Source: Lepidodermella squamata (lineage: Eukaryota; Animalia; Gastrotricha). Taken from it: a stretch of 64,000 nt of DNA. Below are positions 3,901-45,432 of the stretch, piece by piece (the first letter of the stretch is position 1; each line of letters starts with the position of its first letter). The position numbers were made by a program, and so were the translations under genes. The notes under the pieces were generated by a model. That model did not search any database and was not told the DNA's origin. It saw nothing but the letters and a program-made list of their open reading frames with translations. The stretch spans positions 372,001-436,000 of the forward strand of contig JBLDXI010000030.1 of assembly GCA_047495785.1 (NCBI GenBank). The letters run 5' to 3'.

Positions 3901-3917
3901 TTGCTATTCTCGAGTAA
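917..3917 (+). CDS. Multi-exon SEA-domain mucin-like glycoprotein, paralog 2 (SP, sushi-like, ConA/LamG-like, S/T stalk, SEA, GPI-type tail)
   Basis: ATG at 917 with signal peptide MAYKIFSFAFTWLLASLVKC. Sushi-like C..CMGGGSW...C; first intron 1203-1257; LAASWPLT and WTIS motifs; poly-Thr stalk; FRKGSIIADY; hydrophobic C-terminus. Internal exon boundaries only partly resolved. Confidence 0.75.
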
Positions 3918-7078: not shown

Positions 7079-7129
7079 ATTGAAACGTGGTTATTTTCCT
7101 AGCTTTTGTGCTTGCAGTTAGAAGCGGCT

Positions 7130-9255: not shown

Positions 9256-9574
9256 TTATTGATTAAAAGGAAGATTTTCATTACCGTCTGTTTCTCCAGA
9301 TCTAGGGAATTCACATTTATTTTCCATTACGTGCGAATAAAAGACCGTCTGAAAACTTCCATGCTGAGTTCTATTTGCTCATTTGCTTATAATCAAATGG
9401 CATCCGTTTTGGACTATGAATATAGTGCTATGTAGGTTTCTTTGATTGGTAAGTTTCCTCCACCCTGAGTTTTATTTGCTTATTTGTTTATTTGCTTATC
9501 AAGTGCGTATCATCCGTTATGGATTAGTTTAATAGTGCTATGAAATGGGTGTAGGGTGTAGCCATTTTTCGAAT

Positions 9575-10925
9575 ATGGGTTTCTTGAAAATGGTTCCGAG
9601 CAGCTTCCTCATGCTTGCAGTGGTACCTTATGCGCTGAGCTACGAGTCGTGCAAATGGACCGCCACGGCCGCAAATGAACTTAAGACGCAAAGTGGAGTT
9701 AATTACTTAGCTCCCCCGGCTGATTTCGACCCAACAAGTGACAAAATCTTCCAATTAGGTAACATCGTAAGTGCACAGTGCAGTTCAACCGGTGTGAATA
9801 CATCGACCAAGTGCCTGGACGGTGGTTGGTGGTCGAAACATGTCCCGGATTGCTCAGCGTTTGGTAAGTACTAGACAATGTTATCGGATTCAGTGTGCGA
9901 CTTTCAGGGGGGATGGGGAGAGGGGGGTCGTCCCCTAGCTCGGCCGGGCCAGACAAAAAAATGAGAATTTATCCCACATGTTCGTTAATTTTAAGAGGTA
10001 TTGGAGCGTGGAGCGTGTTTTAGTGGAAACTCTTCAACATTTTCTCACTTCAGTTTTAGTTGAAATGACTAGTCATTTAGGCAAAAACAGAAAAAAATTC
10101 CATTCCTGGCAGCTCCGGGATCCAAAGGTCGCACCCTGATCGGATAACATCAGACGAGATTTACGATATTGAATTTTAGCTACAAGTGGTAAACAGAGCA
10201 ATCAGACATGCGGCTGGCCTGAATCGCAGCTGCAGGGTCATGTGTACGTGCTAACGAGAGACCTCAACCACTACGTCGAAATCCACGTCAACGTCAACAT
10301 TCACGCTAACATCAAAATCAACATCAGCGCCTTTGTTTCCGATTAGCTCTGCTAAGACTTGGTTCAACTACGAGATTTACGCGACATTGAAGATAGAAGG
10401 CAACAACATTACAATACCTACGTCAAATGTGACAATCTTCACAGATCCGTGGGATCCTGCTTTGAATCAACAGCAGTCAAAAATGTTTATTGCCTTATCA
10501 AACTTCATGATGCCACTAATTTGGGATTTGGCTAACAGAACCGCTCGTAATTTGAATTGCGAGGTCCTTCGGGTTAATATTACCGGCTTTCGAAAGGGTA
10601 GTATCATTTCGGACTATATTGTGGCCCTGCGGAGTTTGACGCAACTGTCTGAGGACGAAATATTAGGGCCAAGGTGGAACAAGCACAGGTGGCACTGAAG
10701 ACTGCTGCAAATGCTAAACTCGCCAACGGCCTGGAAGCATACCGTCTGAGTGAAGTTTCTGTCCAGAAGATTGGCGGTCAGGTTTTGAAAACTCCTGGGG
10801 TCACATCAACTCGAACAATCCAATCGGATCAAGCTAATAACAATAGCAGTAACAATATCAACTTGAACAGCCTTCTGCTATTTGGAGTAATAGCCATTTC
10901 ATCCCGGGCTTACATAACAATATAG
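9575..10925 (+). pseudogene. Decayed SEA-glycoprotein paralog 4 (duplicate of paralog 5)
   Basis: Exon 1 is closely similar to 12528-12802. At ~10268 it jumps from the start of exon 2 to the S/T-SEA region (~1.8 kb missing relative to paralog 5). Frameshift near 10662 splits the SEA domain (ORFs 10333-10698 and 10674-10925). Confidence 0.75.
9891..10138. mobile_element. hAT-type MITE in intron 1 of paralog 4
   Basis: TIR CAGTGTGCGAC / GTCGCACCCTG. 8-bp TSD ATCGGATT/ATCGGATA. Absent from the equivalent intron of paralog 5 (aaaatcggattaaattagac, ~12815). Confidence 0.8.
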
Positions 10926-11060
10926 ACGCTAAACTTTAAGCTATAAGGCTAGGGTTATCACAAAAGATCTGACTTGAGCCTTGATAAATATGGGAGAAAT
11001 CTATAAATAAACGAAGTGCTGTATTCCGATGCAGTTCGGAGCTTGCATATCTATTCGAGT

Positions 11061-11714
11061 CGACATTTCAAACACGGAGTTATGTTTGGTGCTTTTCATT
11101 AACTTGACTCTCTTCGAATGTCTACGTGCTTCCATTCGGGCGATTTGAGTTCTCTATATGACGGATATTTACAGTAACATTGCCTTATAGCTTATAGACA
11201 CAGGAGTATATAATTAATTATTAATTGATAATACAAATTTTGGTATATTCATAGATTATTTGGGTTTCGTTTGTTGATAATTTGAGTAAAGGTGACTATT
11301 AACAATTCTGACGCTGTCTTTCAAGGCTTGAGATGCCATTTCGACGGCTTTGACACCGTTGATGCCTAAGTTCTGCAGCATTTTCATAGCTTCAGTAGTT
11401 AATGAACCCCGGGCATCTATGTAGAGACCATGCACTTCGATTGAGTCTAAATTGTAAGCCTCACGACTAATCGCAGCCTGGAAAAACAGTGTTAAGGTTA
11501 AGATGAGCAAATTCAAAGTATTTAGCCATAGTCAAACTAATTTTCGAGATGGGGCAAATGCCTTTGTCGCATTAACGATAGCCTAGTAACGGCGATTTGA
11601 GCTTTCAGCATATGACAATATAAGACTCAAATCGCCCGAATGGAAGCACGTAGACATTCGAAGAGAGTCAAATTAATGAAAAGTACCAAACATAACTCCG
11701 TGTTTGAAATGTCG
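11061..11714. repeat. ~90-bp inverted repeat pair (11061-11150 vs 11625-11714)
   Basis: cgacatttcaaacacggagttatg...cgatttgagt is the near-exact reverse complement of actcaaatcg...gtttgaaatgtcg. Confidence 0.85.
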
Positions 11715-12009
11715 CCTCGAATAGCGTTCACAATGTCCAAATATCGTCAAAGCGTCGCTTGCCAGAGCGAAATGCTTGTAATCATCGTCAATAGTTTCAA
11801 ACTGATCGCAGATATTCCCGCATGCTTGAACAAAATTTTGGTAATTCTCGACAGAATTTTGAGCAATTTTGTCCAACTTCGACTATTCAAATAGGCTCAA
11901 GTAGCCCCTATGCGACACCCGGGTCCAAATGAATTTTTTTTTTAATTTAAGCATGACAATTAATGGATTGAGCAAGATGTGATAAAAAATGTGCAAATGT
12001 GCTGATGAA

Positions 12010-12230
12010 GTTGCAACCGAGAGTCTCAAAGTGATTGCCCTCTTGAAACTTGCAAATGGTATTGACGCCTTGCAAGTGGCCGAAATAAAATGCGAGGCGT
12101 AAGCGGACCTTTGCTATCGAATAGCAAAACACCCCGACAAATAGAGACATCGCAAAGTAAAGCAGCTGTAGAAAAGACGAGCTTTTGTAAGCTCGTTATC
12201 TTACGTTACCTTTTTTGACAATTCCACTTG
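12010..12230 (+). pseudogene. Remnant copy of the 3' end of paralog 3 (start of a tandem segmental duplication)
   Basis: Aligns by eye with ~6830-7070 (ttgcaaccga...cggacctttgctatcgaatagcaa...gcagctgtag) with indels. The following intergenic DNA matches 9255-9575. Confidence 0.7.
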
Positions 12231-12527
12231 ATTCAAAACGTGATTTGTATCATGTTTGCTCGTTGTTAGAATTGGTTTTTTCCTTTCTTGATTAAAAAAG
12301 GATGCATTTCATTACCGTTTGTTTTCCCATCTCCAGGGAATTCAGAATTCACATTTATTTTCCATTACGCGAATTAAGGACCATCTGGAGACTTCCAAAT
12401 CTTGGTTTCCTCCATCTTGAGCTTTATTTGCTTATTATCAAGTACCATCCGTTTTGGAATAGCTGAATAGTGCTATGAAACTAGTGTAGCTGTGCAACGC
12501 TATTTTTCGAACATTGGTTTCTTGAAA

Positions 12528-15453
12528 ATGGTTCCGATCAGCTTCCTCTTGCTTGCAGTAGTACCTTATGCCCTGAGCTACGAGTCGTGCAAATGGAACG
12601 CCACGGTCGCAAATGAACTTAAGACGCAAAGTGTTGTTAGTTACTTAGCTCCCCCGGCTGGTTTCGACCCAACAAGTGACAAAACCTTCCAATTAGGCAA
12701 CATCGTTAGTGTGCAGTGCAGTTCGACCGGTGTGAATACAACGACCAAGTGCCTGGACGGTGGCTGGTGGTCGAAATATGTCACGGGTTGCTCGAATTTC
12801 AGTAAGTGAGGACAAAATCGGATTAAATTAGACGAGATTTACAATATTGAATCGTAGCTTTAACTAGTGAACAAAGCAACCAACGGTGCAATTGGCCTGA
12901 ATCGCAACTACCGGATCACATGTACGTGCTAACGAGAGATCTCAGACAGATTTGGGTGAATACTTCGACTACAACTGGCTTTTCCAATTCCGAGACCATA
13001 ATGCACGTCTGCCCGTCTGGGTCTTACATCGAAGCTACCTGCTTGAACTCTAATTTTTTGCCCAACCCCAGTGGTTATAAATGTGGGGACCCACCGTCGT
13101 CGGTTGTACCTCCGTCAAAGCTGGTGGGTTATTGGCCGTTAACCGCAGATACGAACTTCAGGTCACTATACCCAAGCATGCCAGATTTCGAGCAGATCAA
13201 CAGCGCTATCTCTCGCCCGGATGAGCCGATGAAAACGACAGGCGCCATGATCGGAAGTGCTCCGCTTGGGACGCTAAAAATCCCAGCCTTACCAATAAAA
13301 GGCCCCTTTTCTTCTTGGACAATATCGTTTTTCGCAACTGGAAATACAATAGGCGAGTTGATACGCATCAAACTCAGCCAAACCGAAGCGCATTTAATTG
13401 AAGTTGCCGCGGGAAAGTTGACTGTGACCCTGAGATCTCAAGGCGCTCACGTCATTTCTTTTACCCAATTCGGAACTGTCAAAGGCTATGTGTTGTACAT
13501 GATAGCTTACGACTCGATTTCACAACAGGTGTCCTGCGTTTCATCGGGCGCACTCAGTGCCGCAGTGAAACTCGGCCAGCTGTCAGATGGAACAATATCG
13601 GCTTCAACTGTCGGCCTTTCCGTTTCCGAGAAGTGAGATATTTCTTTCCTGCTGAATTTCGTCTATTAGCATCGATTTCAGGACAACGAGCGAAGGGACC
13701 TTCGCATGTCTGATGATTTTCCAAACTTATTATAGTGACCAGGACTCAGCAGATTTACTAATGCGTTACTGCGTGGGGGGTAAGATCTATTCATTCATTA
13801 CATATTATTCTTGTAAAAACTGCTGTCCCCAGTTATGACAGCTCCAGTTTATATGGCTGACAAATGCCCGAGCCGAAATTGGATTTACGACGAAGGCCTA
13901 TCAATCAATATCGCCAATTATCGTAACTTCAGTTTTACACTGGCTTCAACAACATCTAAGCCAGTTTTTTATTTGAAGATAAACAGTATTATCGAGGGGC
14001 TGCTGCTGAATTCGGTCGAAGTATTCGTTTGTCGGCTATGGGGCAGAAAGGCATTGTTTGGTGTTCATCGGTTTGTTTTTCGTTATTGCGGATAACTTCA
14101 AATTTAACATCTTTCAAACAGTCTTTCAGTGCTTCTCTGGATTTCTACATCGATTTCGACATGACGTTCGACTTTGAGAAAGCAAATCTCGAGTTTTGGT
14201 TCGTCGCAACTCCTACGTCTTTGGACCTAACAAAGGGCTCGATCGATAGCCGAGGAATAAATGTCAACAACGATCGATTTGTCGGAATGCTAGTAACTCG
14301 AGGTGCATCTATGTTGTATGAAGTATACGTTTCTAACACCACTGGACCTCTCTCGAACGCAATCCAGAAATATACGAATTTCCACTCCCCTCCGCCTGAT
14401 TCTGGAATTGTAATCTATAAATGCGGTGTTACCTTGATCATCGCCAGCAAGAGAAGTTCGGGCATTGAGGTATTGATCATTATTGACGTGCCGGAGTTCC
14501 ACGCAATAACAGATCCGATAACGTTTGGCCTTTTTGCGGATTATCCAATTCATGCGCCTCCAACCAAAACAATGGTCTATCTTCATCACGTCAAGTATTA
14601 CACAAATGGAGCCCTAACAACGAGCTCATCCTCAACTTCGACATCGGTATCAACAAGCACCTCAACAACAACATCAGCGTCAACATCCTCGAAGTCCACA
14701 GCAGCATCAGCATCGACCTCAACGCCAATGGCATCGGCTTCAGCTTTAGCATCATCGAAATCCCCCTCAACAGCAGCATCAGCCTTAACATCATCAAAAT
14801 CTTCATCAACCTCGGCATCAACACTAACATCAAAATCAACATCAGCCATAATAAGTCGTTCATCCGTACCGACAAGCTCCGCAAAACCTTGGCTCAACTA
14901 CGAGATATCAGCCTATTTGAAGATAGAAGGCAACAACATTACAATACCTGCATCCAATATGACAATCACCACAGATCCTTGGGACCAAGCCTTGAATCAA
15001 TCGCAGTCAAAAACGTTTATTGCCCTATCAAACTTCATGATGCCAGTAATTTGGGATTTGGCGAACTCGAGCGCTCGAAATTTGAATTGCGAGGTCATTT
15101 GGGTCAATATTACCAGCTTTCGAAAGGGTAGCATCATTTCTGACTATATTGTCGCCCTGCGGAGTTTGACGCAGCTGTCTGAGGAGGAAATCAAGGTCAA
15201 GGTGGAGAAGGCAATGGTGGCTTTAAAGACTGCTGCGAATGCTGTACTAGCCAATGGCTTGCAAGCATACCGCCTTAGCGAGGTTTCTATTCAGAAGATA
15301 GGTGGCCAGGTTTTGAAAGCTCCTGGAGTAACAACAACTCAAAAAATTCAATCGGATCAAGATAATAACAATGGCAATGACAATATAAGCTTTAGCGGCC
15401 TACTGCTATTTGGAATAATAATCATTTCATCCCAGACTTACATAACTATATAG
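12528..15453 (+). CDS. SEA-domain mucin-like glycoprotein, paralog 5
   Basis: Signal peptide MVPISFLLLAVVPYALS, CLDGGWW, GYWPLT, a long S/T/A stalk (~14620-14880), FRKGSIISDY and a hydrophobic tail. Confidence 0.75.
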
Positions 15454-22870: not shown

Positions 22871-22902
22871 TATGAGTCAACTTTCTCATGTTTTATCTTG
22901 TG

Positions 22903-23292
22903 TTATTCGCATCTGCAGACGTTATGAAATCCAGACCATGAAGGAGCCCTGTGGCAGAACAATGAAATTTCAGTTGATTAATTCGAAGTAAAGCTTACAG
23001 GCCTGCACAGCAAGGAGTACCGCCGCGGCAGTCTTCGTACTTCCCAGCGCATGTTGGCTCCTGCTGATCTTGGGAGCAGAAGCATATGGCGCCCCATACA
23101 CGCGTATGTGCCGTGCTACAATTTTTCGAAGTTGCTAGAGGACATTTTGAAAGGGTGATCATCTTACAGGCCTGGGCAGCAGTCTTCATCAAGGCAGCTC
23201 TGGCCAACACCTGCACAATTTTGTGCGGTCCCCGAAGGAATGACTACAGAGATGACGGCAAAAACAGCCACGCAAACAAAGATACGGTTCAT
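22903..23292 (-). CDS. Secreted double-knottin-like peptide, copy 1 (3 exons, 95 aa)
   Basis: Exons 23292-23168, 23115-22999 and 22948-22903. Product: MNRIFVCVAVFAVISVVIPSGTAQNCAGVGQSCLDEDCCPGLTAHTRVWGAICFCSQDQQEPTCAGKYEDCRGGTPCCAGLAPSWSGFHNVCRCE. Confidence 0.9.
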
Positions 23293-23617
23293 TTCAGATA
23301 TTTTAGCGTAATTGCAATCAAATAATAATGTACTGAAGTAATTACTGGAATTTTGTGATGCAAAACTGGGCAATTTATATTGCAGAGGCTATGAGTTTCC
23401 GCTGGTCGTTCTCACGCCCAAGCCGCTTCCTTGCGCTGATAAGAGGCACGCTATGTCTCAAAAAGTAGGTCGGCTTGATTGCCACTCGGGAAAAATACTA
23501 CTCAGTTTTGATGTTTCACTGCATAATGCTATTCTGCCAGGTGCCAGGTGACACGGTAAGTGAGAGGTGTAAACACCGAGTGAATAATATCAGATTAAAC
23601 GTTTGAGGTCCTGTGGA

Positions 23618-23716: not shown

Positions 23717-24820
23717 AATGTGAATTCCCTCTGTGATGGCATGATTACGATCGGGGCGGAACCGCGCATCGAGGCCCAGTGCAAGATCCGAGAATTCGAC
23801 GAGACAGGCGGTGATGAAATGAGCGACAGAATCGACGGTAAATTCAGGTTTCGGGGCCATTATTGCCGAGGGAAGTTCAAATGATTTCTCTTTGGATTTT
23901 GTCATTTTCGAGCGTCTTGCTATCCTGCAGCAGGGTTCTGGGTTGTTGCTGCAACTCTTGCTTGTAAGTCTTTGGCCGTTATCTGAAAGTTGCCTACCGC
24001 CTGAAGATGCTTTGTGGTTGTCTTTGATCGAGCCCTGCAACATTCGAGCACATGGAAGGTTAGTTTGGAACGCTGAGGATCCAGTTAGGGCTGCATAGCG
24101 AAATCAGTAAACGAGCAAAAGCGAGCAAACGCAGCCTTTCTGCGAAATATACTTTACTAAAACTTCCTGGAATTAAGCAATCTTGAATGGCTCAGAATAC
24201 AGAAACACTTTTCTTGTACGAATGACTGTATGAATCGAGGTTCCGCAGGAACCGAAGATGATAGATTCACAATTTTCGCGACTTTAATGGTCAGTTGGAA
24301 GGAAGTTTGCGTGGAAGCGTTTAACTGGTCGAGTAAGCACGAGTTATTTGGAATAACAGGTTTTGATGAGAAAAGCCGACGTGCCGAAAGCCGAAATTCA
24401 GCCTAGTTAACTACTTCCGAAGCGGATTGGTCAGCAGTGATTTCAGCGGACAATTTATACCAGCTTTTGTGAAATTGAGTAAAGATTCGGATACAATTTG
24501 AGAAGCTAATAATTAGATACCCAGCTTTTTCAAGCTTCCGTTCGACATATTCACACGTGCAGATCCATAATAGAGCCGTACATTGAAACACCGCCTTCCA
24601 GATGCAATCAGCTGGATTCGCATAGATCTGCAAACATTCAATAAGCAGAGCCATATGTGGCAATTTATCGCAGCAAGAGCGGCGAACAGAAGTGTCAGAG
24701 CAAGAGCGGCCACTCGCTACGACGCTATTTCATAGTCCCACCTAGATTTTCCTAATTTTCCTATCCTAATTTGCTATCCTATCCTATCATAATGTCCTGA
24801 GTTTTCGCTAATACGAGTAC

Positions 24821-25199
24821 AGTAGTAAGAAATACCGATACTAGCCCGGGCAGCCGGCCAGGTGAATATGACCTGATAACTCGAATTAAATTAAATTGAA
24901 ATTCAAGTGACACCGCGTAAATGGGCGGGGGTCTTGTCCGTCTGGGTTTGGTGGGGTAGGGCCCGCACCACCGGGCGGACCGGGTAGTTCAAACCCCGCC
25001 CCTTTTCAAGCGATGATGAATCGATAATAACGGGAGTGGTTTCAATCTTTCTCTTCAAGCGAAATTCAGTTCCTAGTGTCTCATCACACGACTGGTTCAG
25101 CTGGCAGCGATGATCGATGACCTGAAAACTGAAATAGGGTGATTCAATTGACGCGGTGTTAATGCCTTGAAACAAAATGGCGTCCCGGGCGCTGTACAT
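24821..25199. repeat. Left TIR of the Polinton
   Basis: Reverse complement of 47199-47577, with only a few mismatches near the inner end. Confidence 0.95.
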
Positions 25200-25283
25200 G
25201 AACGAATAAATCTAACTTTATTCTCCCAGAGCAAAATTTCTCTCAAAGCGATATTGCTCTTGAACCGAAAGTGGGACGACATC

Positions 25284-25761
25284 TTATTTTATTGCAATAT
25301 ATAGAAGGGTCAAACAGAGTGATAGTGCAGGCTTGATCACACCGCTACGAGGGCCGCCGTTCTTTTTGCTTGCCCAAATAGGACCGCAGTCCAAAGTTTC
25401 GGTGTTGCAAAAGTCAGTACAACACTGGCAATAAGTTCCGGAACCATTCATTGTCAAATTAAGATAACTGACTCCCGAAGAGCAAGGCGGACTGTTCTTG
25501 TCAACGCAAGTGTATTGAACGAAGCCTGCGTTGCCTCCTTCGAACGAATAGGCCACTTTCTAATAACGGGAAGATGAAAAATTTCAAGCATGATGCAGCC
25601 ATACATACCACACATTGAATGCAGCCGGTGGATGATCCTATCCCTGCCTGCTGCGTTCCTGTTAATGTTGAGTAGTAGCTCCCCTTAAAGTTTTGGAATC
25701 CCTGATAGCAGTTCAAAGCATGAATGATGGGCAACTGAGTGAGAATAAGAAATAACAGCAT
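25284..25761 (-). CDS. Ly6/uPAR three-finger protein A, GPI-type tail (2 exons, 142 aa), inside the Polinton
   Basis: Exons 25761-25609 and 25559-25284 with a 49-nt GT-AG intron. Signal peptide, then ALNCY...CIQC...C...C...CQCCTDFCN, then a hydrophobic tail. Confidence 0.8.
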
Positions 25762-25928
25762 TTTTGCAGTTGAACGTAGACTGATAATAAACAGATGGCA
25801 TAATGCTGTGGCTTGATGCTTCGTTGCCTGGCTACAGTCTCCCAGTCGCTATGGGGAAAATCGATTTGCAGCTGCTCTCACCACGAACGCCGTCAGTGCG
25901 ATAGCTTGGTACATTTATTGTCGTTGAC

Positions 25929-26485
25929 ATGATCCTATCGATTCTATATTTTCTTACATCTCTCCATGCGGTCCTTTGTAAGTTATAAACATCATCAGTT
26001 TTACCGCTTACTTAATCAGTTGCATAGGTTTGTCATGCTACTCATATAGCAGTGTCAGTCCCGGGAGCACACTCGGAATAGCAAAAAGCGAGTGCGATGC
26101 TTGCTGGGCTTTTCAAACTGTCACGACCGACTGTGACACCACCTCTGCCACGAGAGTTGATCTTTTCATGCAATGTGCATGTCGAGCTGGATCCACTACC
26201 TGTACAGGTGTGAGACTCAAACAAGATCAATATTGTGGATTCCAAAACTTGACGACAAATACGTGCTGGGGAGCTGTGAAGGAATGTGTTTGTTGCTCAA
26301 ATTACTGCAATCATGAAAATTTCTGCATTCCACCAACCGATAAAAAGTTTTACCTTCTTACGACAGCACCTCCAAGCGATACTACGTCACAGTCAAGTGG
26401 ACGAAACACCTCTAACGCTTTAAACTTCAGATTCCTCACCGCAATAATTCCAGCTATAATCCTGATCTCGCTTCATTCAATTTAA
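25929..26485 (+). CDS. Ly6/uPAR three-finger protein B, GPI-type tail (2 exons, 168 aa), inside the Polinton
   Basis: Exon 25929-25977 (MILSILYFLTSLHAVL), 50-nt phase-1 intron (gtaagt...catag), exon 26028-26485: LSCY...CDAC...CVCCSNYCN, S/T linker, hydrophobic tail. Confidence 0.82.
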
Positions 26486-26559
26486 ATTACGCGAAACAAA
26501 TAATTTCCTGAATAAGTTTATTCTTGATGACAGTTTTGCGTCTCCATATATGCCTATTC

Positions 26560-26680
26560 ACAAAATTTGAAAAAATAAAAAAGTTGAGACGCGAGTTGGA
26601 ATCGAACCAGTTACTTTATTCATACAACAAATTTGAAAAAGTTAAAAAAACTTGTGACGCGAGATGGAGTCGAACCGCAT
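26560..26680 (-). repeat. Two tandem ~68-bp units resembling tRNA 3' halves (B box followed by oligo-T)
   Basis: Minus strand reads GGTTCGATTCCAACTCGCGTC..TTTTTT and GGTTCGACTCCATCTCGCGTC..TTTTTTT. Confidence 0.6.
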
Positions 26681-27102
26681 CCTTTATAAGCATTATAAGA
26701 AAGCGCATTTTTGTGTGTACACTGTGGCGTAGTGGATAAAGCGTCTGCCCTAGCAGACAGGCCGTACCTAGGCCTTAAACGGGGAGTGATGCCGCTAACG
26801 TGTTTGCCCAGGCGGTTAAACTGAGCAACGTCCTGGTACCGACGTAAAAAGGTCCCGTCCAAAGACGTAAAACTAAAACGACCTTGGTAGCGTCGAAAAA
26901 CCTATCACGACATTTGTGAGGTCGTTAAAACTTCTATGTTAGGGAGATGAGCAACCAGTTCTCCACTGCGGTGAAAACTGCATGTTTTAAACTGGAAGGA
27001 AAGTCGTAGAAGACCTTCAGGCATCACGGGGCGGAGACTTTTGCTTTCGCAATTTTTATTTACAGCATTATATAAAGTAATAACAAGTATATAGGTTGGG
27101 CC

Positions 27103-27185
27103 TCGTCCCGTAGCTCAGTGGTTCACGCACTGGGCTTTCCGTTTTGAGGGTCGGGTTCGAGTCCACACTGAAACAGAGAATTTTT
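27103..27185 (+). ncRNA. tRNA-like putative Pol III transcription unit (not a canonical tRNA)
   Basis: TATATAAAG ~30 bp upstream. A box TAGCTCAGTGG (27111-27121), B box GGTTCGAGTCC (27154-27164), TTTTT at 27181. The acceptor stem does not pair. Confidence 0.55.
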
Positions 27186-27278
27186 CTTTCTTTTCTTCTC
27201 TTTCTTCTTCTTTCTCTTTCTCTTTCTTCTTCTTCTTTCTCTTTCTCTTTCTTCTTCTTTCTCTTCTTTTCTTTCTTT
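27181..27278. repeat. ~100-bp pure polypyrimidine (CT/CTT) tract
   Basis: Only C and T on the + strand. Confidence 0.9.
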
Positions 27279-27281
27279 AGA

Positions 27282-27560
27282 TTAAAACTTTTGCTTTTTC
27301 ATTATCCAACTTCCACGATCCGTACTTTCAATAATATGACTGCTCAGAAGCGAATTAGATTGTCGAATTTCGCCCACTTCACGAGAATTCAAACAGTAAA
27401 AGTCATTTATAATATTCAGTAATATATTATTCTCCTCGGTGAAATCGAACACCCAGCCGTAGCAATTATCCATGTACATATCCAATTTCGATAAATAGAA
27501 CTGAAGGCTTTTGAGTTCCTGAGGGCTTTTGGGGTACTTGATCATTTGCTCCATTTTCAC
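27282..27560 (-). CDS. Small hypothetical Polinton protein
   Basis: 92-aa ORF directly downstream of, and co-oriented with, pPolB. No motif recognised. Confidence 0.4.
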   Translation of the reverse strand: MKMEQMIKYPKSPQELKSLQFYLSKLDMYMDNCYGWVFDFTEENNILLNIINDFYCLNSREVGEIRQSNSLLSSHIIESTDRGSWIMKKQKF

Positions 27561-27587
27561 CTTATCTTATAAGCCTCACTGCTTTAA

Positions 27588-32024: not shown

Positions 32025-33446
32025 CTAATCCAACAAGTTATCAGCGGGCTCCCAAGTCGGCTTATCATATCCTGCCCATTTGACGTAAACCATTTCTTTG
32101 CCTTTAACTTTCTTCCTTCTCAAAATCTTTTCAACCCGGTAAAGGTTTTCTTGCTGTTGGGAAGATTTCTGCAATTCCTGTTCGTAAAAGCTACCTACTA
32201 CTGGTTCACCATCTAGAGCCTCGATTTTATAGGTTCTAGGAATGGTTTCGTTAACCTTGACGACTTTAAGAAGCTCTTCACTCCATGAAGGGTGGAAACC
32301 TTTTTCAAAGGTCTCTTTCAGTCGGCTGATCCTCACAATGTCACCAAGAGCGAACTTGGGCTTACGTAACTTTTTTTCATCTGATTCCGCGTACAAATTG
32401 TTGTGAACGATGTCTCTATTCTTTGGATCTATCGCCTGAGTTGGCGTCATTCGAATCGATCTGTGATTAGTAAGGTTGTACTCTCGAACTAGGTCATCTG
32501 ATATTGCAACCCAATTACGTGAGTTGTTAAGTGTAAAGCGTTTCCACATTCTAGTTTTAAGAGTCCTGTTAAACCTCTCGATCATAGGGTTATGAAAATT
32601 TTCATAGGTCGAGTACCGATTCACCTTATTTGCTTTCAACCATTTAGTGAAGATTGAATTATAAAATTCACTACCCTCATCGACCCAAATATTTTTAGGC
32701 TTTCGTCGGCTTGTCTTAATAACTGATGAGAAGGCATCGAAAACACTTTTTGCGTCTTTTGATTTCAGTGGGACGGCCCATGCATATCTGCTGAAGCAGC
32801 ATATCACGGTCAAAATGTACTTATAGCCATTATTGTCATCGGTCAAGTCGTTCATGAAGACTATGTCCATGCCCCATGTGTCGTCAACGTTATGCACATA
32901 AACGCGACGTCTTGGAAACCGCTTTCTTGCGGGTTTATGAAGCTCCTCAGCTAATGTTTCAAACTTCATTTTGCTAACTGTTTCTGATCGCGGCGGCTCT
33001 TGTTTTGTCTTTCGCTTCGGAATTTGTTGCGAGTAGCTAACAGGTCTCCTATCTCGAAGAGCCATGCCTTTCCCTTGCAGATGGTCAGCGATTCCACCTT
33101 CAACGAACGTTTTGTAGACAAATGCTGCCATAGCCCTCTCATAACCACTTTTCGATCGATCACTAGCAATCCTGAGTGCCTTGTCTGCAAGAATTCTATC
33201 GCTAACGGTGCGTTGCTCTCTGTCTTTGTAAAAGTGATAAGCAGCGTCATGTTCTCTGGCTGCCTCGTCCAACTCATTTATACCTCTGTAGCCCTGGCTC
33301 ATTCTTTGAACAAAATGTGTTCCTGGGCCAGCGTAGCTATATGACTGCTTATTGTTATAAGACCCTCCAGGAACGGTTTCTCCTTGAACGGGATAACTCG
33401 GTAAATGGAATTCCACCGGCAAATTGTTAATTATTCTGTCAAACAT
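32025..33446 (-). CDS. Parvovirus-type PLA2 domain fused to retroviral-like (rve) integrase with C-terminal chromodomain
   Basis: PLA2: YSYAGPGT and INELDEAAREHDAAY. Integrase: ELHKPARKRF, WGMD, WVDEGSEF, IERFNRTLK. Chromodomain: YRVEKIL...YVKWAGY...TWEP. Confidence 0.93.
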   Translation of the reverse strand: MFDRIINNLPVEFHLPSYPVQGETVPGGSYNNKQSYSYAGPGTHFVQRMSQGYRGINELDEAAREHDAAYHFYKDREQRTVSDRILADKALRIASDRSKSGYERAMAAFVYKTFVEGGIADHLQGKGMALRDRRPVSYSQQIPKRKTKQEPPRSETVSKMKFETLAEELHKPARKRFPRRRVYVHNVDDTWGMDIVFMNDLTDDNNGYKYILTVICCFSRYAWAVPLKSKDAKSVFDAFSSVIKTSRRKPKNIWVDEGSEFYNSIFTKWLKANKVNRYSTYENFHNPMIERFNRTLKTRMWKRFTLNNSRNWVAISDDLVREYNLTNHRSIRMTPTQAIDPKNRDIVHNNLYAESDEKKLRKPKFALGDIVRISRLKETFEKGFHPSWSEELLKVVKVNETIPRTYKIEALDGEPVVGSFYEQELQKSSQQQENLYRVEKILRRKKVKGKEMVYVKWAGYDKPTWEPADNLLD

Positions 33447-36042: not shown

Positions 36043-38112
36043 ATGACTGATAACGACCATTGGCTGAAACAGTTTCCTCCGAGGATAGTGGATTCTAGAC
36101 ACCGCCCATCCAAACAAGCGATGGAAAGAAAACGCAAGCGCAACTCTGGGAAACCCTACCGTCAGTCAGATAAAGGGGTTAGCGCTAAGTTTAATTCCGG
36201 TCGTAAGCCTGTTTACTTCAAGTGTGGTTGCTGGCGTAAATGCTCCTTGAAATTCAATGAAAATTCAGTCAAACAATGCTTTAACACTTACTGGTCCCGA
36301 GCATCTATCGACGCTAGACGAGCATTCATCAACCGTTACCAGTGTGCGAAGTAGGATCCGGGAGCTGAGGTGTTTTCTACCTGTTTTCTAGGACCCCGCC
36401 GAAGAAACCAAAGGGTCCCCCCTGTGGTTTTTTCAGCCTTCCTCTGGTTGGAGTCCTGGAGCTGGGGTGTCGCGACACCCCAGCACCCCTGTACTTCGCA
36501 CCCTGACCGTTACGTCAGTTATAAACAGAAACGAGAGAATGGTCCTCGAAGATTTGATTATTACTTACCAGGCAACTACTTGGCAACCCCTTCGCCTTCA
36601 CAATCTAGGGACTCAATCGAAGTATGCAGGTCTTTCTTTCTGAAGGCGCTCGATGAAACTCGCGCTTTTATAAACACAACTGTTGAGAAAAAAGTCGAAG
36701 ACGGCTTCTACATCATACCAGATCAACGCGGTCGCCATAAGCCGCCGAATACCACCAGCGATAATTCTTACAAATTTGTTTATCAGCACATCACTTCTTT
36801 CGAGCGATTAGACAGTCATTATGCGAGAAGTCAAACTAGCAAGCAATATCTCGGGTCCGCGCTCAATCTGAAGGAAATGCAACGAATGTACTGCATAGCA
36901 CACCAAAACTGGGCTCTGCGTACTGATGAGAAACCCGTCAAATACGCTACTTACCGATCCATATTCAAGAGATCTTTTCCCAATCTCGCTTTCAGTCATC
37001 CGAAGAAGGACACCTGCAAGAAATGCACACGATTTGCGACTTTGCCGGATGAACTGTTCACCCATGAAGTGATCGTGGAGAAACGGAACCACGAATCCAA
37101 CAGAGACGCTGCAAGAGATGCCAAGAATGCTGACAAAATTCTAGCAAAACAGTCGAAAGGATTGATCTTGTGCATCCAGTTTGATATGCAGTCAATCCTC
37201 GAAAGCCCTTGCTGCTCGATAATGTACAAAAAAAAGTTCCACACCTCAAACCTGACTTTCTACGATACTTCATCAAAAGATGTCTACTGTTTCATGTGGG
37301 ATCAAACAGAAGGGGGTCGTGGGACGGATGAAGTTGGTTCATGTCTCTATAAATTCATCACTGAAATGATTCCTGACGAAGTTGAGCAGTTGATTCTATG
37401 GAGCGACAGCACTGGAAGCCAAAACAAATCTCAGTACATTGTCAACGCTTTATTCGCAGCCTTGTCCAATTCCAAAGGTAATCTCAAGGTCATCGATCAC
37501 AAGTTTTTCGAGCCGGGCCACTCGCAAATGGAATGTGATTCCGTGCATGCCACTATTGAAAGGGAAGCTAAGAAACGAGTCAACATCAGCTATTCAAAGG
37601 AATGGAGAGAAATCGTGGCCGCGTCGCGGAAGGCTCCGATTGATGCTGATCTGAGACTCGAAGTGTACGGCGAGGAAACACCAAACCGCTTGAAAGTGAA
37701 ACCATACAGCATAACTGAAATGCAATTTGCAAGCTTCTTCAGCTTTGACAAGTCACCAAAGTTCGCTCAGTATTTGCAAGACGAACAGAAAAATGATGTT
37801 AAATGGTCGGAGCCATGTTGGTTCAGATACGAGAAAGACTACCCTAATTATCTCCAAACCAAGAAAACTTTCGAGTTGGCTTTTCATACTTTCGTCGCCA
37901 AGCGCTACAACAAAGACGTCATTTTGTTTCCTTTCCAACTTGTTCAAAAATACGAAAAGCGATTGCCGATCGAATCCAGTCTTAAGAAGGATCTCATCGA
38001 AATGGTCAACAAAGGCACCATTCCAGAAGCTTATCGCTCAGTCATAATGGCTTACGAGGAAGACGCAGACAAACCTACTGCTTGCAGCATTGACGCTAAA
38101 CCTCCGCCGTGA
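36043..38112 (+). pseudogene. Sola-like transposase (~631 aa ancestral) interrupted by a MITE
   Basis: Motifs VCRSFFL, DQRGRH, SHYAR, KKDTCKKC, FDMQ, WSDSTGSQNK and GHSQMECDSVH. Removing the MITE gives ...RAFINRY|VSYKQK... in frame. Confidence 0.82.
36340..36505. mobile_element. 166-bp hAT-type MITE
   Basis: TIR CAGTGTGCGAAGTA / TACTTCGCACCCTG. Perfect 8-bp TSD ACCGTTAC (36332-36339, 36506-36513). Confidence 0.92.
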
Positions 38113-39401
38113 CATTACGCCCTCGAAACTTGGATGGATATGACTACTTGAAAGCGTTTCAAAATTATTAAAACAAGCTTATTGTTGCGAGTTTGAACTG
38201 TGTTTTACTCGAGCTGTCTAAGAACGATTCAGTCCATGAGTTTCTGAAACGTTTCCTCCATGATTATCTCGGAATTCCCAGCGCAGATACCTCAGAATGA
38301 CCGCAGTATCGAAGATATTTGTTGGTCATTATTTGTCCAGTACATATATTTTTTTCACACAGAATACAATGGGCTATATCTTACTACATGTGTGCGTAGT
38401 ACTATTTATAGTGCGTAGTACTCTGGATAGGAATTTTTTCATTGGCTTCTTATAGCGCAAAATCATCGATGTATATGCTTTAAAGTATAAGCATAGTGTA
38501 AATGTTGAACCCGATCCCCTTACAGCTTTGCATGAGACTTACAGGCAGATGCCAACTGTAGAGGCAATAAGATCCGTTGCCAAGGAGCTCAAACAAACAG
38601 CAAAGAGAAGCTTACCAACAGCTAATCACCCGCATCACCTAGAAGCGGTATTACCAAAGGCGGAACCGACAACTGAAGAGGCGAAGGAATCAGTGGAGGA
38701 CATAGTTTTGAAGAGACATAACTTCCCCACAGCTAAAGAAATTGAAGAGGCTGGGGCTGACCCCGCGCATATTATTGTATCTCTTTCGCACTATAATAAA
38801 AATGTGTTGGGCTCCCAACTAGCTCAGCTCACTAAAAAAGGATACAAAGACTCTCCACAGTATCAATCGATTCAAAATGATATACAGATTTTGAAAAACT
38901 TCAAGAACTCGTTGCTTGAGACATTTGAGAATCAAAGGGTGCTACTTGAGAAAACTGGTACAGGTATATCCAACAATTATTTGAAGATTGGTAGGTTTTA
39001 CGCCAGAAAAGACGACATAAAGCGAGGGGTTTTAAGGATTCGCAAGAAGAATAAAGGCAAAGTGCAAGGTTTAGCCGATATAGACATAAGTGATGGTGTC
39101 AAACAATTGCTCTTGAAAAGGTACAATCCGAAGGTGAACTTTTCCAAGCAAGACTATGATCAATACCAAAAAATTTGTGAACTGACTGGATATCGACCAA
39201 AACCCCATTCTAAAATCTGGAACAGAATTTATGTGACTGATGTTGTTGATGCCCAAAAGAGGCTCGTAAACGCGATTGGTGAAATCAGAGCGGGAAACAA
39301 TAACGCTGAAATATATAACGAAGTTGTTAGTATTGCAGATTTTCTTTTGAAGAACAATAGATTGACCAAAGCTGAATACGAAAATCTAATAACAATGGTA
39401 A

Positions 39402-40142
39402 ATGGGTGATCCAATATTTCTGCCTTTGGAATATTACTGCAATAACAGATCGGACGCCAGCAACATCATCGATCGTTACCTAAATGATAAGATCGATTTC
39501 ACAAAGCGCAGCATCGCCGTTTCATATATTCACTTTTACGATGTTTTTTATAATGTATCACAGGCTTCAGGTAATAGTAAGCTCAGATATAAAGATCCAG
39601 AAGATGCGACTTTTGAAATACGATTTCCTGATGGAACCTTCACTTTTCGTGATTATAACAATTATATTCACTTTGTTATGAAAGGAAACGGCCATTTCAA
39701 GACCATCGATGGCTCAGAAGTTTACGGCATAAGCTTATCTGTCAATACTGTTCTGAATAAACTGAGCTTTCGAATTCAACCAGGTTACGCTCTTCTGATC
39801 GAGCATGATGCTACGTCTGAATTTCTAGGTGTAGACAAAGGCGAATTCCGAGCAGATTTTAATGGGCAACATATTCCTAACATCACGATGTCAAATGACT
39901 CAATGTTTGTTCACTGTAACGTCGTCAATAATAGCCTAGTCCCGGAGGTTAGTGATGTCATCTTCACCTGTCCGATTAACAAAAATTTCGGTCAACACGT
40001 TAACATTGTTCCAAATGAGAAACGTTACTTGTCCTGTACGAATGCTAATACACAAAACATAAAAATAACGCTCACCACCCAGGCTGGTGCACCACTGGAG
40101 ATGACTGAAAGAAAATGGGGTATTGGTCTAGATATTCGCTAG
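39402..40142 (+). CDS. Minor capsid protein (penton-like)
   Basis: FYNVS...FPDGTF..DYN, FVHCNVVNNS...SDVIFT, and IKITLTTQ.G.PL match the pattern of Polinton pentons. Located next to the major capsid gene. Confidence 0.8.
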   Translation: MGDPIFLPLEYYCNNRSDASNIIDRYLNDKIDFTKRSIAVSYIHFYDVFYNVSQASGNSKLRYKDPEDATFEIRFPDGTFTFRDYNNYIHFVMKGNGHFKTIDGSEVYGISLSVNTVLNKLSFRIQPGYALLIEHDATSEFLGVDKGEFRADFNGQHIPNITMSNDSMFVHCNVVNNSLVPEVSDVIFTCPINKNFGQHVNIVPNEKRYLSCTNANTQNIKITLTTQAGAPLEMTERKWGIGLDIR

Positions 40143-40165
40143 CTTTTTCTAGTTACTTTGTTATA

Positions 40166-40465
40166 ATGAAAAATCGCAGAACTAAAGCATATGTCGTAGG
40201 ACGCGGTTACGTAGACATCGCAAGAAATATGCTCGACAAATTGACTGGTGTCTTACCGGTTCAGACTTTAGCCAAATCAGCTCTTTCAAAGGCAGCGGAA
40301 GTTGCCGGTGACAAAATAGGTGCATATGCCGCAAATAAACTTGCAGACAAAGTTATGCCGGCAAAGCCAGCTGAGCGCTCTATTCAGGCTATTGAGGAGC
40401 TTGAGAAGAAAATCAAAAGAGACATCGATAATTACACCGGAACAGGCTTTAAGCTGATACGCTAA
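40166..40465 (+). CDS. Small putative core/virion protein
   Basis: Ala/Lys-rich amphipathic ORF with VVGRG and YTGTG motifs, between penton and major capsid genes. Confidence 0.55.
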   Translation: MKNRRTKAYVVGRGYVDIARNMLDKLTGVLPVQTLAKSALSKAAEVAGDKIGAYAANKLADKVMPAKPAERSIQAIEELEKKIKRDIDNYTGTGFKLIR

Positions 40466-40484
40466 ATATCTAATGCATATATAA

Positions 40485-41858
40485 ATGCTTCAATCCGAAA
40501 TAGTGAACTGTCTCTTTGAGAGCCCGACCATAGATGATCGGCAGTTCGAAAGGAAAAGCTGGGCCGAGGTTTGTGCAACAAGCTTTATACAGGATCAGCC
40601 CTCTCAGCCTTCTCGCCTTATCTTTTCTACATATAACTTGCGTGAGTTGTTTATATTGCCGAGGGAAGCCTATATCCAGTTGACTGTTGAGTTCCGACGA
40701 AACGATAGTCAGGCTTTCAAAGCAACCGACAAGTACGCAATTAGGAACCATGTTATATCCATGTTTGAAACAGTTGAAGTGCAAGTAGGTGATAATGATA
40801 ACCAGGTAGAGCAAACACGTTATAACGAACACTGGAGCTCGTTGCTGGGCGTTATTCACTGGTCTGATGACTATGCGCGAAGTCTTGGGGAAGAATCACT
40901 TTTCGCCAGAGACTACCCAGCCCATGTCAATTATGATATGACTCCTGAAGTTACAGCAGAAAGTTTCGACCCTGCGAAGAACAGCTGCAACGAGGGACTA
41001 CTCTTGAGATCTTTGTATGTTAAGGATCATAAGATGGTTGTCACACTTTACTTAAGGGACATTCCTTTCTTCCAAAATTATTTTGGGATGTGGACCAAGG
41101 CGAGATTTCGTGTGATATTAACACCAAATTACACCAAACCCATAGTCGCAGCCATAGGGAAAAACGATGATTTGCCGGAAGGGATGCATTTCCAAATTTC
41201 GTCAGCTTATATGTTTATTCCGGAAGTCACATTGATGCCTGAAACTAGAGCACGCATTTTGAAAGCCTTCAATACGGGTCTCACGAAACTTTACAAATGG
41301 CAATCGCTAGAATGCTTTCAGAGCCCCCAGTTTGCTGTGAATAGTTCATCGGTACAATGGACAATCACATCTGAGATGAAAAAACCAAGCTGGCTGTATA
41401 TTGTATTCTTGCAAGACTTCTCAGACGCAGAGTATCAAACAAAACTGACACAAATTTACACTCAGTGGAATATATTCAGCTACTCTCTCATGATAAACAA
41501 TAAGGAGGCGTTTGCCGAGGCCAACATGAACTTTTCCCGCTTCAACGCTCACCGGCTCTATAACTATATTAAGGAAAACATGAACCATTTCAATGATCGT
41601 GAAAGCACGAACACTGGTAGTCAGCTTAGTTACCTTGATTTTTGTCGATTTTACCGTTTCCTGGCATTCAATCTGGAAAGTGTAGATGCCGGTGCTATAT
41701 ATAATTCACGCGGTGACCAAAGCGTGAGCGTCACATTCAAAGCTAGAATCAGCCCTGTCGATAAGCCATTAGTTATGTTTTGTTTTATTTTTAGAGAAAA
41801 AGAAATAGGCTTCAACTACAAAGACGACAAGCTCGAGATAAGCCTTAACATGCTCTGA
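40485..41858 (+). CDS. Major capsid protein (double jelly-roll/hexon-like), 457 aa
   Basis: Size, position and motif pattern (ILPREAYIQL, MFETVEV, IPEV, KPSWLYIVF, FLAFNL) typical of Maverick major capsids. Confidence 0.8.
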   Translation: MLQSEIVNCLFESPTIDDRQFERKSWAEVCATSFIQDQPSQPSRLIFSTYNLRELFILPREAYIQLTVEFRRNDSQAFKATDKYAIRNHVISMFETVEVQVGDNDNQVEQTRYNEHWSSLLGVIHWSDDYARSLGEESLFARDYPAHVNYDMTPEVTAESFDPAKNSCNEGLLLRSLYVKDHKMVVTLYLRDIPFFQNYFGMWTKARFRVILTPNYTKPIVAAIGKNDDLPEGMHFQISSAYMFIPEVTLMPETRARILKAFNTGLTKLYKWQSLECFQSPQFAVNSSSVQWTITSEMKKPSWLYIVFLQDFSDAEYQTKLTQIYTQWNIFSYSLMINNKEAFAEANMNFSRFNAHRLYNYIKENMNHFNDRESTNTGSQLSYLDFCRFYRFLAFNLESVDAGAIYNSRGDQSVSVTFKARISPVDKPLVMFCFIFREKEIGFNYKDDKLEISLNML

Positions 41859-41879
41859 ATTTTCTAACTTAGAATAATA

Positions 41880-42458
41880 ATGACTAAATACATTCCATTC
41901 GACATTAAACTAACAGAGACACAGAGAAGAGCATTTCAAAAACCAGGCCAAGTTGTATTGCGTTTCACAATTGATCAGCTTCTTGCAGATCCAAATGGTT
42001 CCAAGTTGTTGTTGACGCAAAGGCAGATAGATAAAGTAATGAAGAGCAAACAAAGGATGAAAGGGCTTGATATTAAACTGAGCAAAACTCAGCTCCGGAA
42101 GAATCAGTCTGGCGGGTTCCTGTTACCAGCGCTTGCCGCAGCTTCCAAATTTATAGCACCTGTAGCTGTTGCAGCGCTGAGCGGCCTTGCCAGTTCCCTC
42201 GCCAGTACAGCAGCTGACAAGATCGTAGGCAAAGGCGTGTCGCTGACAATACCAAAAGAGGATTTAAATGAACTGCAAAAGGCGGTTTCGCTTCTGGAAT
42301 CCCGACAAATTGTGCCTGCTGGCAGTAGTAAGGCAATTAAAAGCCATATAGAGCAACAGGGTGGAGCTTTTATCTTGCCGCTTGTATCAAGCTTACTGGG
42401 TGCATTCCTTCCGACCTTATTCGGAAAAGGGGTTTATATGCCGTGGGAAAAAAACTGA
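41880..42458 (+). CDS. Putative core/membrane-active virion protein with protease-cleavage motifs
   Basis: LLLTQRQI...IKLSKTQL, QSGGFLLPALAA, IVGKG, QQGGAFILPL and LFGKG; resembles the GGFL-type proteins of Mavericks and adenovirus pX. Confidence 0.65.
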   Translation: MTKYIPFDIKLTETQRRAFQKPGQVVLRFTIDQLLADPNGSKLLLTQRQIDKVMKSKQRMKGLDIKLSKTQLRKNQSGGFLLPALAAASKFIAPVAVAALSGLASSLASTAADKIVGKGVSLTIPKEDLNELQKAVSLLESRQIVPAGSSKAIKSHIEQQGGAFILPLVSSLLGAFLPTLFGKGVYMPWEKN

Positions 42459-42901
42459 CAAATACCGGGTTTTATCCCCTATCCAATCTTGAGATAACCG
42501 AAGCTTTGAAGAGGCTCCTCGGAAAAGACTTCAAGGGCTGTTATGCTCGGGATGACCTTCCTGATAAACTTGAACGAGGATATTACGTCATTAACCTGGA
42601 CGATAAAGTTAACCGCGGAAGTCATTGGGTCTCAATGGCTGTGAAGTCGACTGAAATAATCTACTTCGATAGCTTCGGGTTTATATGCCCTAATGAGATC
42701 ATTAAGCGTCGCGGCAAACGAGTTATTTGGTATTCCACACATGATATACAACATCCTGGCTCTGTTGCATGTGGCTTCTATGCCATTTACTTTCTAAGAG
42801 AATTAGGTAAAGGTAGGGATAAGTTAGCTATTTTGCTAGACTTCAATAACACCGGGTCACCGCACAATGATGACTTACTGAAAAATCTATTGTTAAGCTA
42901 G
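42443..42901 (+). CDS. Adenain-like cysteine protease
   Basis: INLD...GSHWV (His), YFDSFG (Asp), IQ...SVACGFY (Gln/Cys). Confidence 0.92.
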   Translation: MGKKLTNTGFYPLSNLEITEALKRLLGKDFKGCYARDDLPDKLERGYYVINLDDKVNRGSHWVSMAVKSTEIIYFDSFGFICPNEIIKRRGKRVIWYSTHDIQHPGSVACGFYAIYFLRELGKGRDKLAILLDFNNTGSPHNDDLLKNLLLS

Positions 42902-42903
42902 AT

Positions 42904-43083
42904 ATGTATTGCCTGCATTGTAGGAAAAACACTAAATCAGTGAATGAGCAGCAATTAGCCACTCGTAATAACCGAGCTCTCATGACAGGATCTTGTACAC
43001 TCTGCGGTATGACAAAGTATAAATTCATAAGAATGTTAAAGAGAAACGCCATCGTAGATAAAAAGGATGCAAGCGTCCGTTGA
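42904..43083 (+). CDS. Zinc-ribbon protein (DUF5679-like), 59 aa, absent from the ORF track
   Basis: Manual translation: MYCLHCRKNT...TRNNRALMTGSCTLCGMTKYKF... Confidence 0.7.
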   Translation: MYCLHCRKNTKSVNEQQLATRNNRALMTGSCTLCGMTKYKFIRMLKRNAIVDKKDASVR

Positions 43084-44219: not shown

Positions 44220-44233
44220 TAAATATATTCAGA

Positions 44234-45071: not shown

Positions 45072-45089
45072 TAAGTATTAAAACGATTT

Positions 45090-45425: not shown

Positions 45426-45432
45426 GCTTATA

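Follow-up and report, generated by a model that had tools for sequence, protein, structure and literature searches.

The window analysed here is a stretch of 64,000 nucleotides from the gastrotrich Lepidodermella squamata (assembly GCA_047495785.1, contig JBLDXI010000030.1, positions 372,001–436,000), and all positions below are numbered from its first letter. It contains a Polinton/Maverick element of 22,757 bp. Next to the left terminal inverted repeat (TIR) of this element lie two small intron-bearing genes, A (minus strand) and B (plus strand), which are predicted to encode secreted cysteine-rich proteins. The two genes are divergent and arranged head-to-head, adjoin the left TIR, and precede the polymerase open reading frame (ORF). 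Their exons and introns are listed with the other features of the element in Table 1.

The element spans positions 24821–47577, and its termini, read against the flanks, are AGTAGT…ACTACT. An inverted repeat pair of 380 nt (arms 24820–25199 and 47199–47578, 99% complementary) covers the two TIRs of 379 nt each, and an identical hexamer stands outside each of them as the target-site duplication (TSD). The TIRs differ at only 3 of 379 positions, indicating that the insertion is young. No stops, frameshifts, insertions or deletions were counted in the recognised genes, and the core ORFs are uninterrupted and intronless, as the initial annotation of this DNA had noted for Maverick core genes in general. 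Intact vertebrate Mavericks are recognised by such traits, namely a TSD of 6 bp, TIRs a few hundred bases long and (AGT)2//(ACT)2 termini (PMC8097293). The element is intact-looking and, apparently, recently integrated. With TIRs, TSD and termini confirmed, the cargo pair does lie inside an intact-looking Polinton, as had been claimed, and occupies its TIR-proximal accessory region.

To model splicing, every frame-compatible GT–AG pair was enumerated for genes A and B. In gene A, the first reading frame stays open only if an intron of about 49 nt is spliced out, and otherwise runs into a stop. The main ORF of gene B, 151 codons long, has no ATG near its start, and gains a start and a hydrophobic leader only via an intron. 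The introns proposed at first, 25560–25608 and 25978–26027, are the best of the frame-compatible pairs. Several alternative GT–AG pairs lie within a few bases in gene A, and one weaker alternative exists in gene B. Both genes need an intron; its ends are well fixed in B, whereas those in A are approximate. The two ATGs (25761 on the minus strand and 25929 on the plus strand) agree with the head-to-head arrangement at about 167 bp that had been described. An AATAAA lies 61 nt past the stop codon of gene A and 88 nt past that of gene B. The poly(A) signal of gene A is 18 nt from the inner edge of the TIR, and the sequence runs on from the TIR into gene A without a break.

Predicted products of genes A and B

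The features of the products were read exon by exon, and signal peptide and tail were judged by a Kyte–Doolittle rule. The products, about 140–165 residues long, are small, disulfide-rich ectodomain proteins with N-glycosylation sequons and a hydrophobic C-terminal tail. The first 16 residues form a hydrophobic leader (mean Kyte–Doolittle value 2.11 in A and 1.99 in B), which is followed by L-x-C-Y. In both products the first cysteine is at predicted mature position 3, after Leu-x, and the next cysteine after L-x-C-Y is 18 residues on in B and 28 in A. Common to the two are C-x2-C, an F-x-Q-x-x-C…C-x-G-V block, an invariant N-L-T sequon, C-x-CC-x3-CN-x-E and one further cysteine. The shared skeleton comprises 10 cysteines, and gene B has four extra ones, so that both ectodomains have an even number of cysteines (10 and 14).

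The last 20 residues have a mean Kyte–Doolittle value of 1.47 in A and 1.62 in B, and the hydrophobic stretch ends at or beside the C-terminal residue. Small residues (G, S, N, A) are located 8–12 residues upstream in both products. The signal peptide, the LxCY…CCxxxCN pattern and a tail of the glycosylphosphatidylinositol (GPI) type had been attributed to both genes. The leader, the motifs and the hydrophobic tail are indeed found; the GPI nature of the tail is putative.

Compared by BLASTP, the two products align with an E value of 6e-4 over the C-terminal motif block. Aligned over both halves, they are 37–38% identical, with the cysteines in register and the N-L-T sequon invariant. A point against the relationship is that the N-terminal halves of A and B yield no BLASTP alignment. 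Judged by the alignment, genes A and B are paralogues. An exact 14-nt inverted match is also present between 25688–25701 in gene A exon 1 and 26237–26250 in gene B exon 2; it encodes G-F-Q-N in frame in both, at different places of the cysteine skeleton. By chance, 3 kb should contain about 0.03 matches of this kind, and gene conversion or chance may account for the one seen here.

All six frames of the window, when translated, contain the CC-x3-5-CN motif only four times, and two of the four occurrences are in the cargo ORFs. None of 2000 shuffles of positions 25200–26520 produced two Cys-rich segments, and a motif-bearing segment arose in 0.05% of them. The probability of at least 14 cysteines in 100 residues is about 2e-6. 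From these sequence statistics, the cargo pair is judged to consist of real genes, or of genes that were real until very recently.

Relation to the Ly6/uPAR family and origin of the pair

The initial annotation had assigned both products to the Ly6/three-finger proteins. Members of the Ly6/uPAR (LU) family are marked by a domain of about 60–90 residues, 8–10 cysteines at set spacing, a usual GPI anchor and a three-exon gene (PMC4839075, PMC6893729, PMC13719153). The domain starts with L/V-x-C-x-x-C and ends with CC-x3/4-CN, which is given as CCXXXCN in PMC6893729 and with four X in PMC4839075. Its canonical cysteines are at positions 3, 6, 13, 19, 26, 39, 45, 63, 64 and 69, and the gene has the signal peptide in exon 1 and the mature region in two further exons (PMC4839075).

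Like CD59 and LY6E (PMC4839075, PMC6893729), both cargo products have a hydrophobic leader, a Leu-x-Cys start, CC-x3-CN, an even number of cysteines and a putative GPI-type tail. The span from the mature Leu to CN, counted as residues of the separate exons, is about 88 residues in A and about 94 in B, the latter slightly over the range. The C-terminal half of the products resembles C-x5-C-x17-CC-x4-C, with one cysteine before CC and one after CN. The intron of gene B lies at the signal-peptide boundary only and that of gene A inside the domain only, after about 35 mature residues; these positions may match canonical Ly6 ones.

A number of observations weigh against Ly6 membership. The second cysteine of L-x-C-x-x-C is absent in both products, and the first 35 or so mature residues contain three cysteines versus five canonical ones, the cysteines being shifted to the C-terminal half; the cysteine after CN is extra with respect to the family. 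No match to the Pfam clan CL0117 (uPAR_Ly6_toxin) was found with whole exons at E ≤ 1 or, as in the UPAR_LY6 check proposed at the outset, with trimmed exon pieces at E ≤ 10, in tests that were run on separate exons, with gene A as two pieces, and with HMMER filters that may drop weak matches. Among PDB sequences no relative was found, either with each protein or with a two-sequence profile; a match to fish egg lectin (E 0.13) was judged to be chance. Word-index protein searches, including one of 5.8 billion clusters, returned no homologue, and HMMER, run exhaustively against 1.84 billion representatives, returned no relative of the Cys domain. Two matches from the exhaustive search are spurious, as they are repeat proteins aligned to the Ser/Thr stalk and not to the Cys domain.

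Because no homologues were found, there was no alignment for fold prediction. Single-sequence AlphaFold2 was run on gene B, and its models are of low confidence (predicted local distance difference test score, pLDDT, 41.7 for exon 2 and 46.6 for the trimmed domain), indicating neither a three-finger nor another fold. A Foldseek search of the low-confidence gene B model against PDB gave nothing below E = 1. With the Pfam clan, PDB and large-database searches blank and the fold models uninformative, the Ly6/three-finger claim is not borne out. Because every homology-based test failed, we do not count the pair among the Ly6 proteins. The evidence for membership consists of motifs, and on this evidence the chance that the cargo products adopt a three-finger fold is about even.

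The origin of the pair can be considered against the host genes on either side. Six paralogous host genes of three exons each, all on the minus strand, form a tandem array at 22880–23300, 48105–48520, 50250–50715, 53262–53715, 58686–59145 and 62826–63285. These genes encode a leader and two knottin/inhibitor-cystine-knot (ICK)-like units (C-x6-C-x5-CC…C-x-C), with a weak Toxin_9 match (E 0.06). The Polinton is inserted between copies 1 and 2 of the array, leaving one copy on the left and five on the right. The 12 introns common to the six paralogues are 50–64 nt long and have GT[AGT]AG donors. At 49 and 50 nt, the cargo introns thus have a host-like size, in agreement with what had been said of them.

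Host-like introns argue that the cargo genes evolved in a nuclear chromosomal setting or passed through one, and the introns make it reasonable to infer capture at the DNA level. The further claim that host genes were captured found no corroboration, as neither the window nor any database searched contains a host homologue. In the 41 kb of flanks within the window, tblastn with each exon and a motif scan revealed no host paralogue or donor of the cargo. The flanking knottin-like array was considered as a donor and rejected, as it is a different Cys-rich family with no relation to the cargo. In addition, neither the G+C content (GC; 0.431 in the cargo, 0.416 in the core and 0.431 in the host flank) nor that of third codon positions (GC3) sets the cargo apart from core or host.

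Taking these results together, we lean towards the view that genes A and B are paralogues which, as accessory (cargo) genes, occupy the left accessory region of a Polinton/Maverick that looks intact and was integrated recently; their domain may be a divergent one of Ly6/uPAR type. A bolder version, in which a recently or currently active invertebrate Maverick carries a conserved module of a true three-finger, GPI-anchored pair that is used against infection or host recognition, or is moved between species, is in our estimate unlikely. We consider it somewhat unlikely that the genes are real and yet neither Ly6/three-finger nor host-captured, that is, lineage-specific Polinton accessory genes with another disulfide-rich fold and convergent motifs. 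The blank homology tests, the deviation of the cysteine distribution from the canonical Ly6 pattern, the lack of a host paralogue in the 41 kb of flanks and the core-like composition would all fit such genes, and adintoviruses and Mavericks do hold diverse unassigned accessory genes (PMC8502044, PMC8097293). However, a leader, Leu-x-Cys at mature positions 1–3, a terminal CCXXXCN and a GPI-like tail, within about 90 residues, make a fairly specific Ly6 signature, and host-size introns are unusual for element-native genes, the core being intronless.

It is improbable that the ORFs are not functional, whether as chance frames or as decaying, unexpressed remnants. The failure of every database search to return a homologue and the ambiguity of the exact gene A splice junction speak for this, but the shuffles, the even cysteine counts and the cysteine skeleton and sequon kept between otherwise diverged paralogues speak against it, as do the consensus donors exactly where the frame demands them, the poly(A) signals, and the youth of an element whose recognised ORFs are uninterrupted. 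A pair foreign to the Polinton, brought in by a separate nested insertion or by an assembly artefact, is very improbable. To the right of gene B, the transfer RNA (tRNA)-like fragments and the microsatellite in the 1.1-kb spacer could be debris of another insertion; however, no direct or inverted repeats above chance length bracket positions 25200–26520, the sequence is unbroken from the TIR into gene A, there is no composition step, and the place beside the TIR is a known one for cargo and accessory genes.

Other genes of the element and its surroundings

In the translation of the 1339-residue ORF, exonuclease motifs and polymerase A-, B- and C-type motifs are recognised by eye. Profiles do not recognise it as a polymerase, and no polymerase match was found in Pfam, PHROGs or PDB sequences. 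An endonuclease-VII-like insert is located at residues 576–627, approximately (E 6e-4 in Pfam, 7e-5 in PHROGs). The integrase ORF matches the Pfam families rve (E 1.4e-12) and Chromo (E 3.9e-8), and its N-terminus is a parvovirus-type PLA2-like domain (E 3.6e-9), in frame with the rve core and the chromodomain. The packaging ATPase matches Pox_A32 in Pfam (E 9.6e-9) and the terminase large subunit in PHROGs (E 1.2e-9). The protease ORF matches Peptidase_C5 with an E value of 2.7e-4 and 21.1 bits, just under the cut-off of 21.3.

Table 1 Features of the Polinton/Maverick element and of its cargo gene pair
Feature	Position	Strand	Basis or remark
Left TSD, GAGTAC	24815–24820		hexamer identical to 47578–47583
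Left TIR, 379 nt, starts AGTAGT	24821–25199	+	3 mismatches against right TIR
Gene A exon 2: rest of Cys-rich domain, C-x-CC-x3-CN, two N-glycosylation sequons, hydrophobic tail, stop	25284–25559	-	translation
Gene A intron, 49 nt, GTATGT…TTAG, phase 0	25560–25608	-	best of several frame-compatible models
Gene A exon 1: ATG at 25761, signal-peptide-like N-terminus, L-x-C-Y, C-x2-C	25609–25761	-	translation
Intergenic region between divergent ATGs, 167 bp; presumed shared promoter	25762–25928		promoter role inferred
Gene B exon 1: ATG at 25929, signal-peptide-like segment, 16 codons + 1 nt	25929–25977	+	translation
Gene B intron, 50 nt, GTAAGT…ATAG, phase 1	25978–26027	+	one weaker frame-compatible alternative
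Gene B exon 2: L-x-C-Y, 14-Cys domain ending C-x-CC-x3-CN, Ser/Thr/Pro-rich stalk, hydrophobic tail, stop	26028–26485	+	translation
Spacer between cargo and polymerase	26486–27587		AATAAA at 26574, tRNA-like 3' fragments, (TTCTTC)n microsatellite, 92-aa ORF (27282–27560, -)
Putative protein-primed family-B DNA polymerase with endonuclease-VII-like insert, uninterrupted ORF, 1339 aa	27588–31607	-	motifs by eye
Integrase ORF, 473 aa: PLA2-like domain, rve core, chromodomain	32025–33446	-	Pfam
A32/FtsK-type packaging ATPase, 256 aa	33405–34175	+	Pfam and PHROGs
Uninterrupted ORF block, 580, 293, 246, 116, 457 and 192 aa; candidate virion genes	36370–42458	+	no recognisable families
Adenain-like cysteine protease ORF, 152 aa, borderline	42443–42901	+	Peptidase_C5, Pfam
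Three more ORFs, 168, 219 and 199 aa; first with zinc-ribbon-like motif	43067–44815	+	ORF list
Right accessory region, small ORFs of 84, 111, 85 and 97 aa	44816–47198	-	ORF list
Right TIR, ends ACTACT	47199–47577	-	inverted repeat and terminal sequence
Right TSD, GAGTAC	47578–47583		hexamer identical to left one

The candidate capsid ORFs (580, 457, 293 and 246 aa) have no match in Pfam, PHROGs or PDB, and the capsid genes probably sit within the family-less ORF block. In profile scans of the element ORFs, no herpesvirus-like fusogen was recognised. The four ORFs of the right accessory region (44817–46386, minus strand) have no family match; one is transmembrane-like, one is coiled-coil-like and one has a helix-turn-helix-like stretch. 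Each TIR contains a 98-aa ORF (24903–25199, minus strand; 47199–47495, plus strand) that begins at the inner TIR edge and reads outward, and that has no Pfam match. All three TIR mismatches alter amino acids of this ORF, which speaks against coding constraint. In the spacer between cargo and polymerase, three stretches at 26590–26700 (minus strand) and 27098–27172 (plus strand) resemble tRNA T-arm/acceptor ends, and two of them are followed by T-runs. tRNA genes were confirmed neither by ARAGORN nor by Rfam (gathering threshold and E ≤ 1) nor by folding, and the stretches may be debris of tRNA-derived repeats.

The flanks carry animal-type ORFs, namely four SEA-domain ORFs, a Cys-loop receptor, an ankyrin ORF, a Crypton-like recombinase and a reverse-transcriptase fragment. 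To the left, a series of long ORFs at 109–15453 (plus strand) has sub-threshold SEA matches, Ser/Thr-rich repeats and duplications (9561–9860/12499–12798 and 10339–10638/14869–15168), and is probably a mucin-like host gene cluster. Two adjoining ORFs at 7418–8903 (minus strand) match Phage_integrase and DUF3504 and form a Crypton-like tyrosine-recombinase element. A 107-nt inverted repeat pair (11051–11157 and 11618–11724, 94%, 460 nt apart) resembles a miniature inverted-repeat transposable element (MITE) in the host flank. To the right, an ORF at 56083–56820 (minus strand) encodes a Cys-loop ligand-gated ion-channel ligand-binding domain (30.2 bits, above the Pfam threshold), and a 436-aa ORF at 54608–55918 (plus strand) encodes ankyrin repeats. 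The closeness of these two ORFs, 7–9 kb right of the element, to the putative Ly6-like pair is probably a coincidence.

Comparison with known systems and possible roles

In nematode Mavericks, a region of 2–5 kb beside the left TIR holds intron-bearing cargo acquired from hosts (Widen et al., bioRxiv 10.1101/2022.07.12.499685). The gastrotrich element is similar in that intron-bearing genes adjoin the left TIR, the core is intronless, and TIRs, integrase, ATPase and putative polymerase and protease ORFs are present. It differs in what is carried and where: the nematode cargo consists of WASP proteases and KRMA kinases with ubiquitin-like N-termini and lies between TIR and integrase, whereas here a divergent secreted Cys-rich pair lies between TIR and polymerase. 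The nematode cargo is also high in GC, whereas the cargo here does not contrast with its core (0.431 versus 0.416). That no herpesvirus-like fusogen was recognised here is a further difference.

Accessory regions flank the core in vertebrate Mavericks, too (PMC8097293). The element resembles these in its 6-bp TSD, its TIRs and termini, its intronless core ORFs with flanking accessory ORFs, and its size, which is within their range of 12.7–24.6 kb. However, the core genes are arranged in another order and orientation, polymerase and integrase sharing one strand here and the remaining genes lying on the opposite one; the host introns of ~50–60 nt speak against a vertebrate host; and spliced accessory genes are not described in PMC8097293. 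Adintoviruses have PLA2X, gasdermin-like and cupiennin-like genes (PMC8502044), which are comparable to the cargo as small accessory proteins resembling membrane-active or venom proteins of animals, and a PLA2-like domain is found here as well. Unlike the cargo, the adintovirus genes are intronless and belong to the virion module, and PLA2X is a separate gene there and the N-terminus of the integrase ORF here. PMC8502044 mentions no Ly6-like gene, and our literature search found no link of Polintons, Mavericks or adintoviruses with Ly6 or three-finger proteins.

The closest functional parallel to an LU gene carried by a virus is ORF15 of herpesvirus saimiri, a virus-encoded CD59 homologue (PMC7912105, PMC6893729). 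In both cases a virus-type carrier would hold a gene for a Ly6-family surface protein from the host repertoire, with the difference that the Ly6 assignment here is by motif. ORF15 is recognisable as a homologue of host CD59, and its product blocks the complement membrane attack complex. Here, in contrast, the carrier is a Polinton, the gene is present as two diverged copies, and no host counterpart was found.

If the cargo products do belong to the LU proteins, they may work as follows. Host nuclear machinery would transcribe both genes from the intergenic region, acting as a shared bidirectional promoter, and removal of one intron of about 50 nt would join the signal-peptide exon to the remainder in each gene. 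The C-terminal tail would serve as a GPI-attachment signal, and a divergent Ly6/uPAR-type three-finger domain would be displayed. The products would then act on the outer membrane face of cells in which the element is expressed, and possibly on particles, should these have an envelope. Like known LU proteins, they could bind there to a receptor or ligand on the host surface, and such binding could limit further entry (superinfection exclusion) or damp the host response or recognition. Superinfection exclusion and the damping of host recognition would be the most plausible roles; immune evasion, channel modulation and a use of the element as a gene vehicle had likewise been suggested as possible roles.

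Cargo of this sort in a Maverick is of a known kind: intron-bearing cargo has a precedent in nematodes (bioRxiv 10.1101/2022.07.12.499685), and accessory regions are known from vertebrate Mavericks (PMC8097293). What is new here is the cargo itself, a divergent pair of secreted Cys-rich proteins. The pair also illustrates the limits of homology tools: both genes are clearly non-random, yet no relative of either could be detected in a set of 1.84 billion representative proteins. Host genes have been proposed to travel between distant species as intron-bearing Maverick cargo, which has so far been demonstrated in nematodes for two families of intracellular enzymes. A secreted, membrane-anchored Cys-rich pair would extend Maverick cargo to molecules of cell-surface recognition. 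If the Ly6 reading is true, the element would be a second, independent virus-type element with an LU protein, after the CD59 homologue of herpesvirus saimiri, and if the pair is a conserved module of three-finger proteins, no virus-like transposon with LU-domain genes would have been known before this one.

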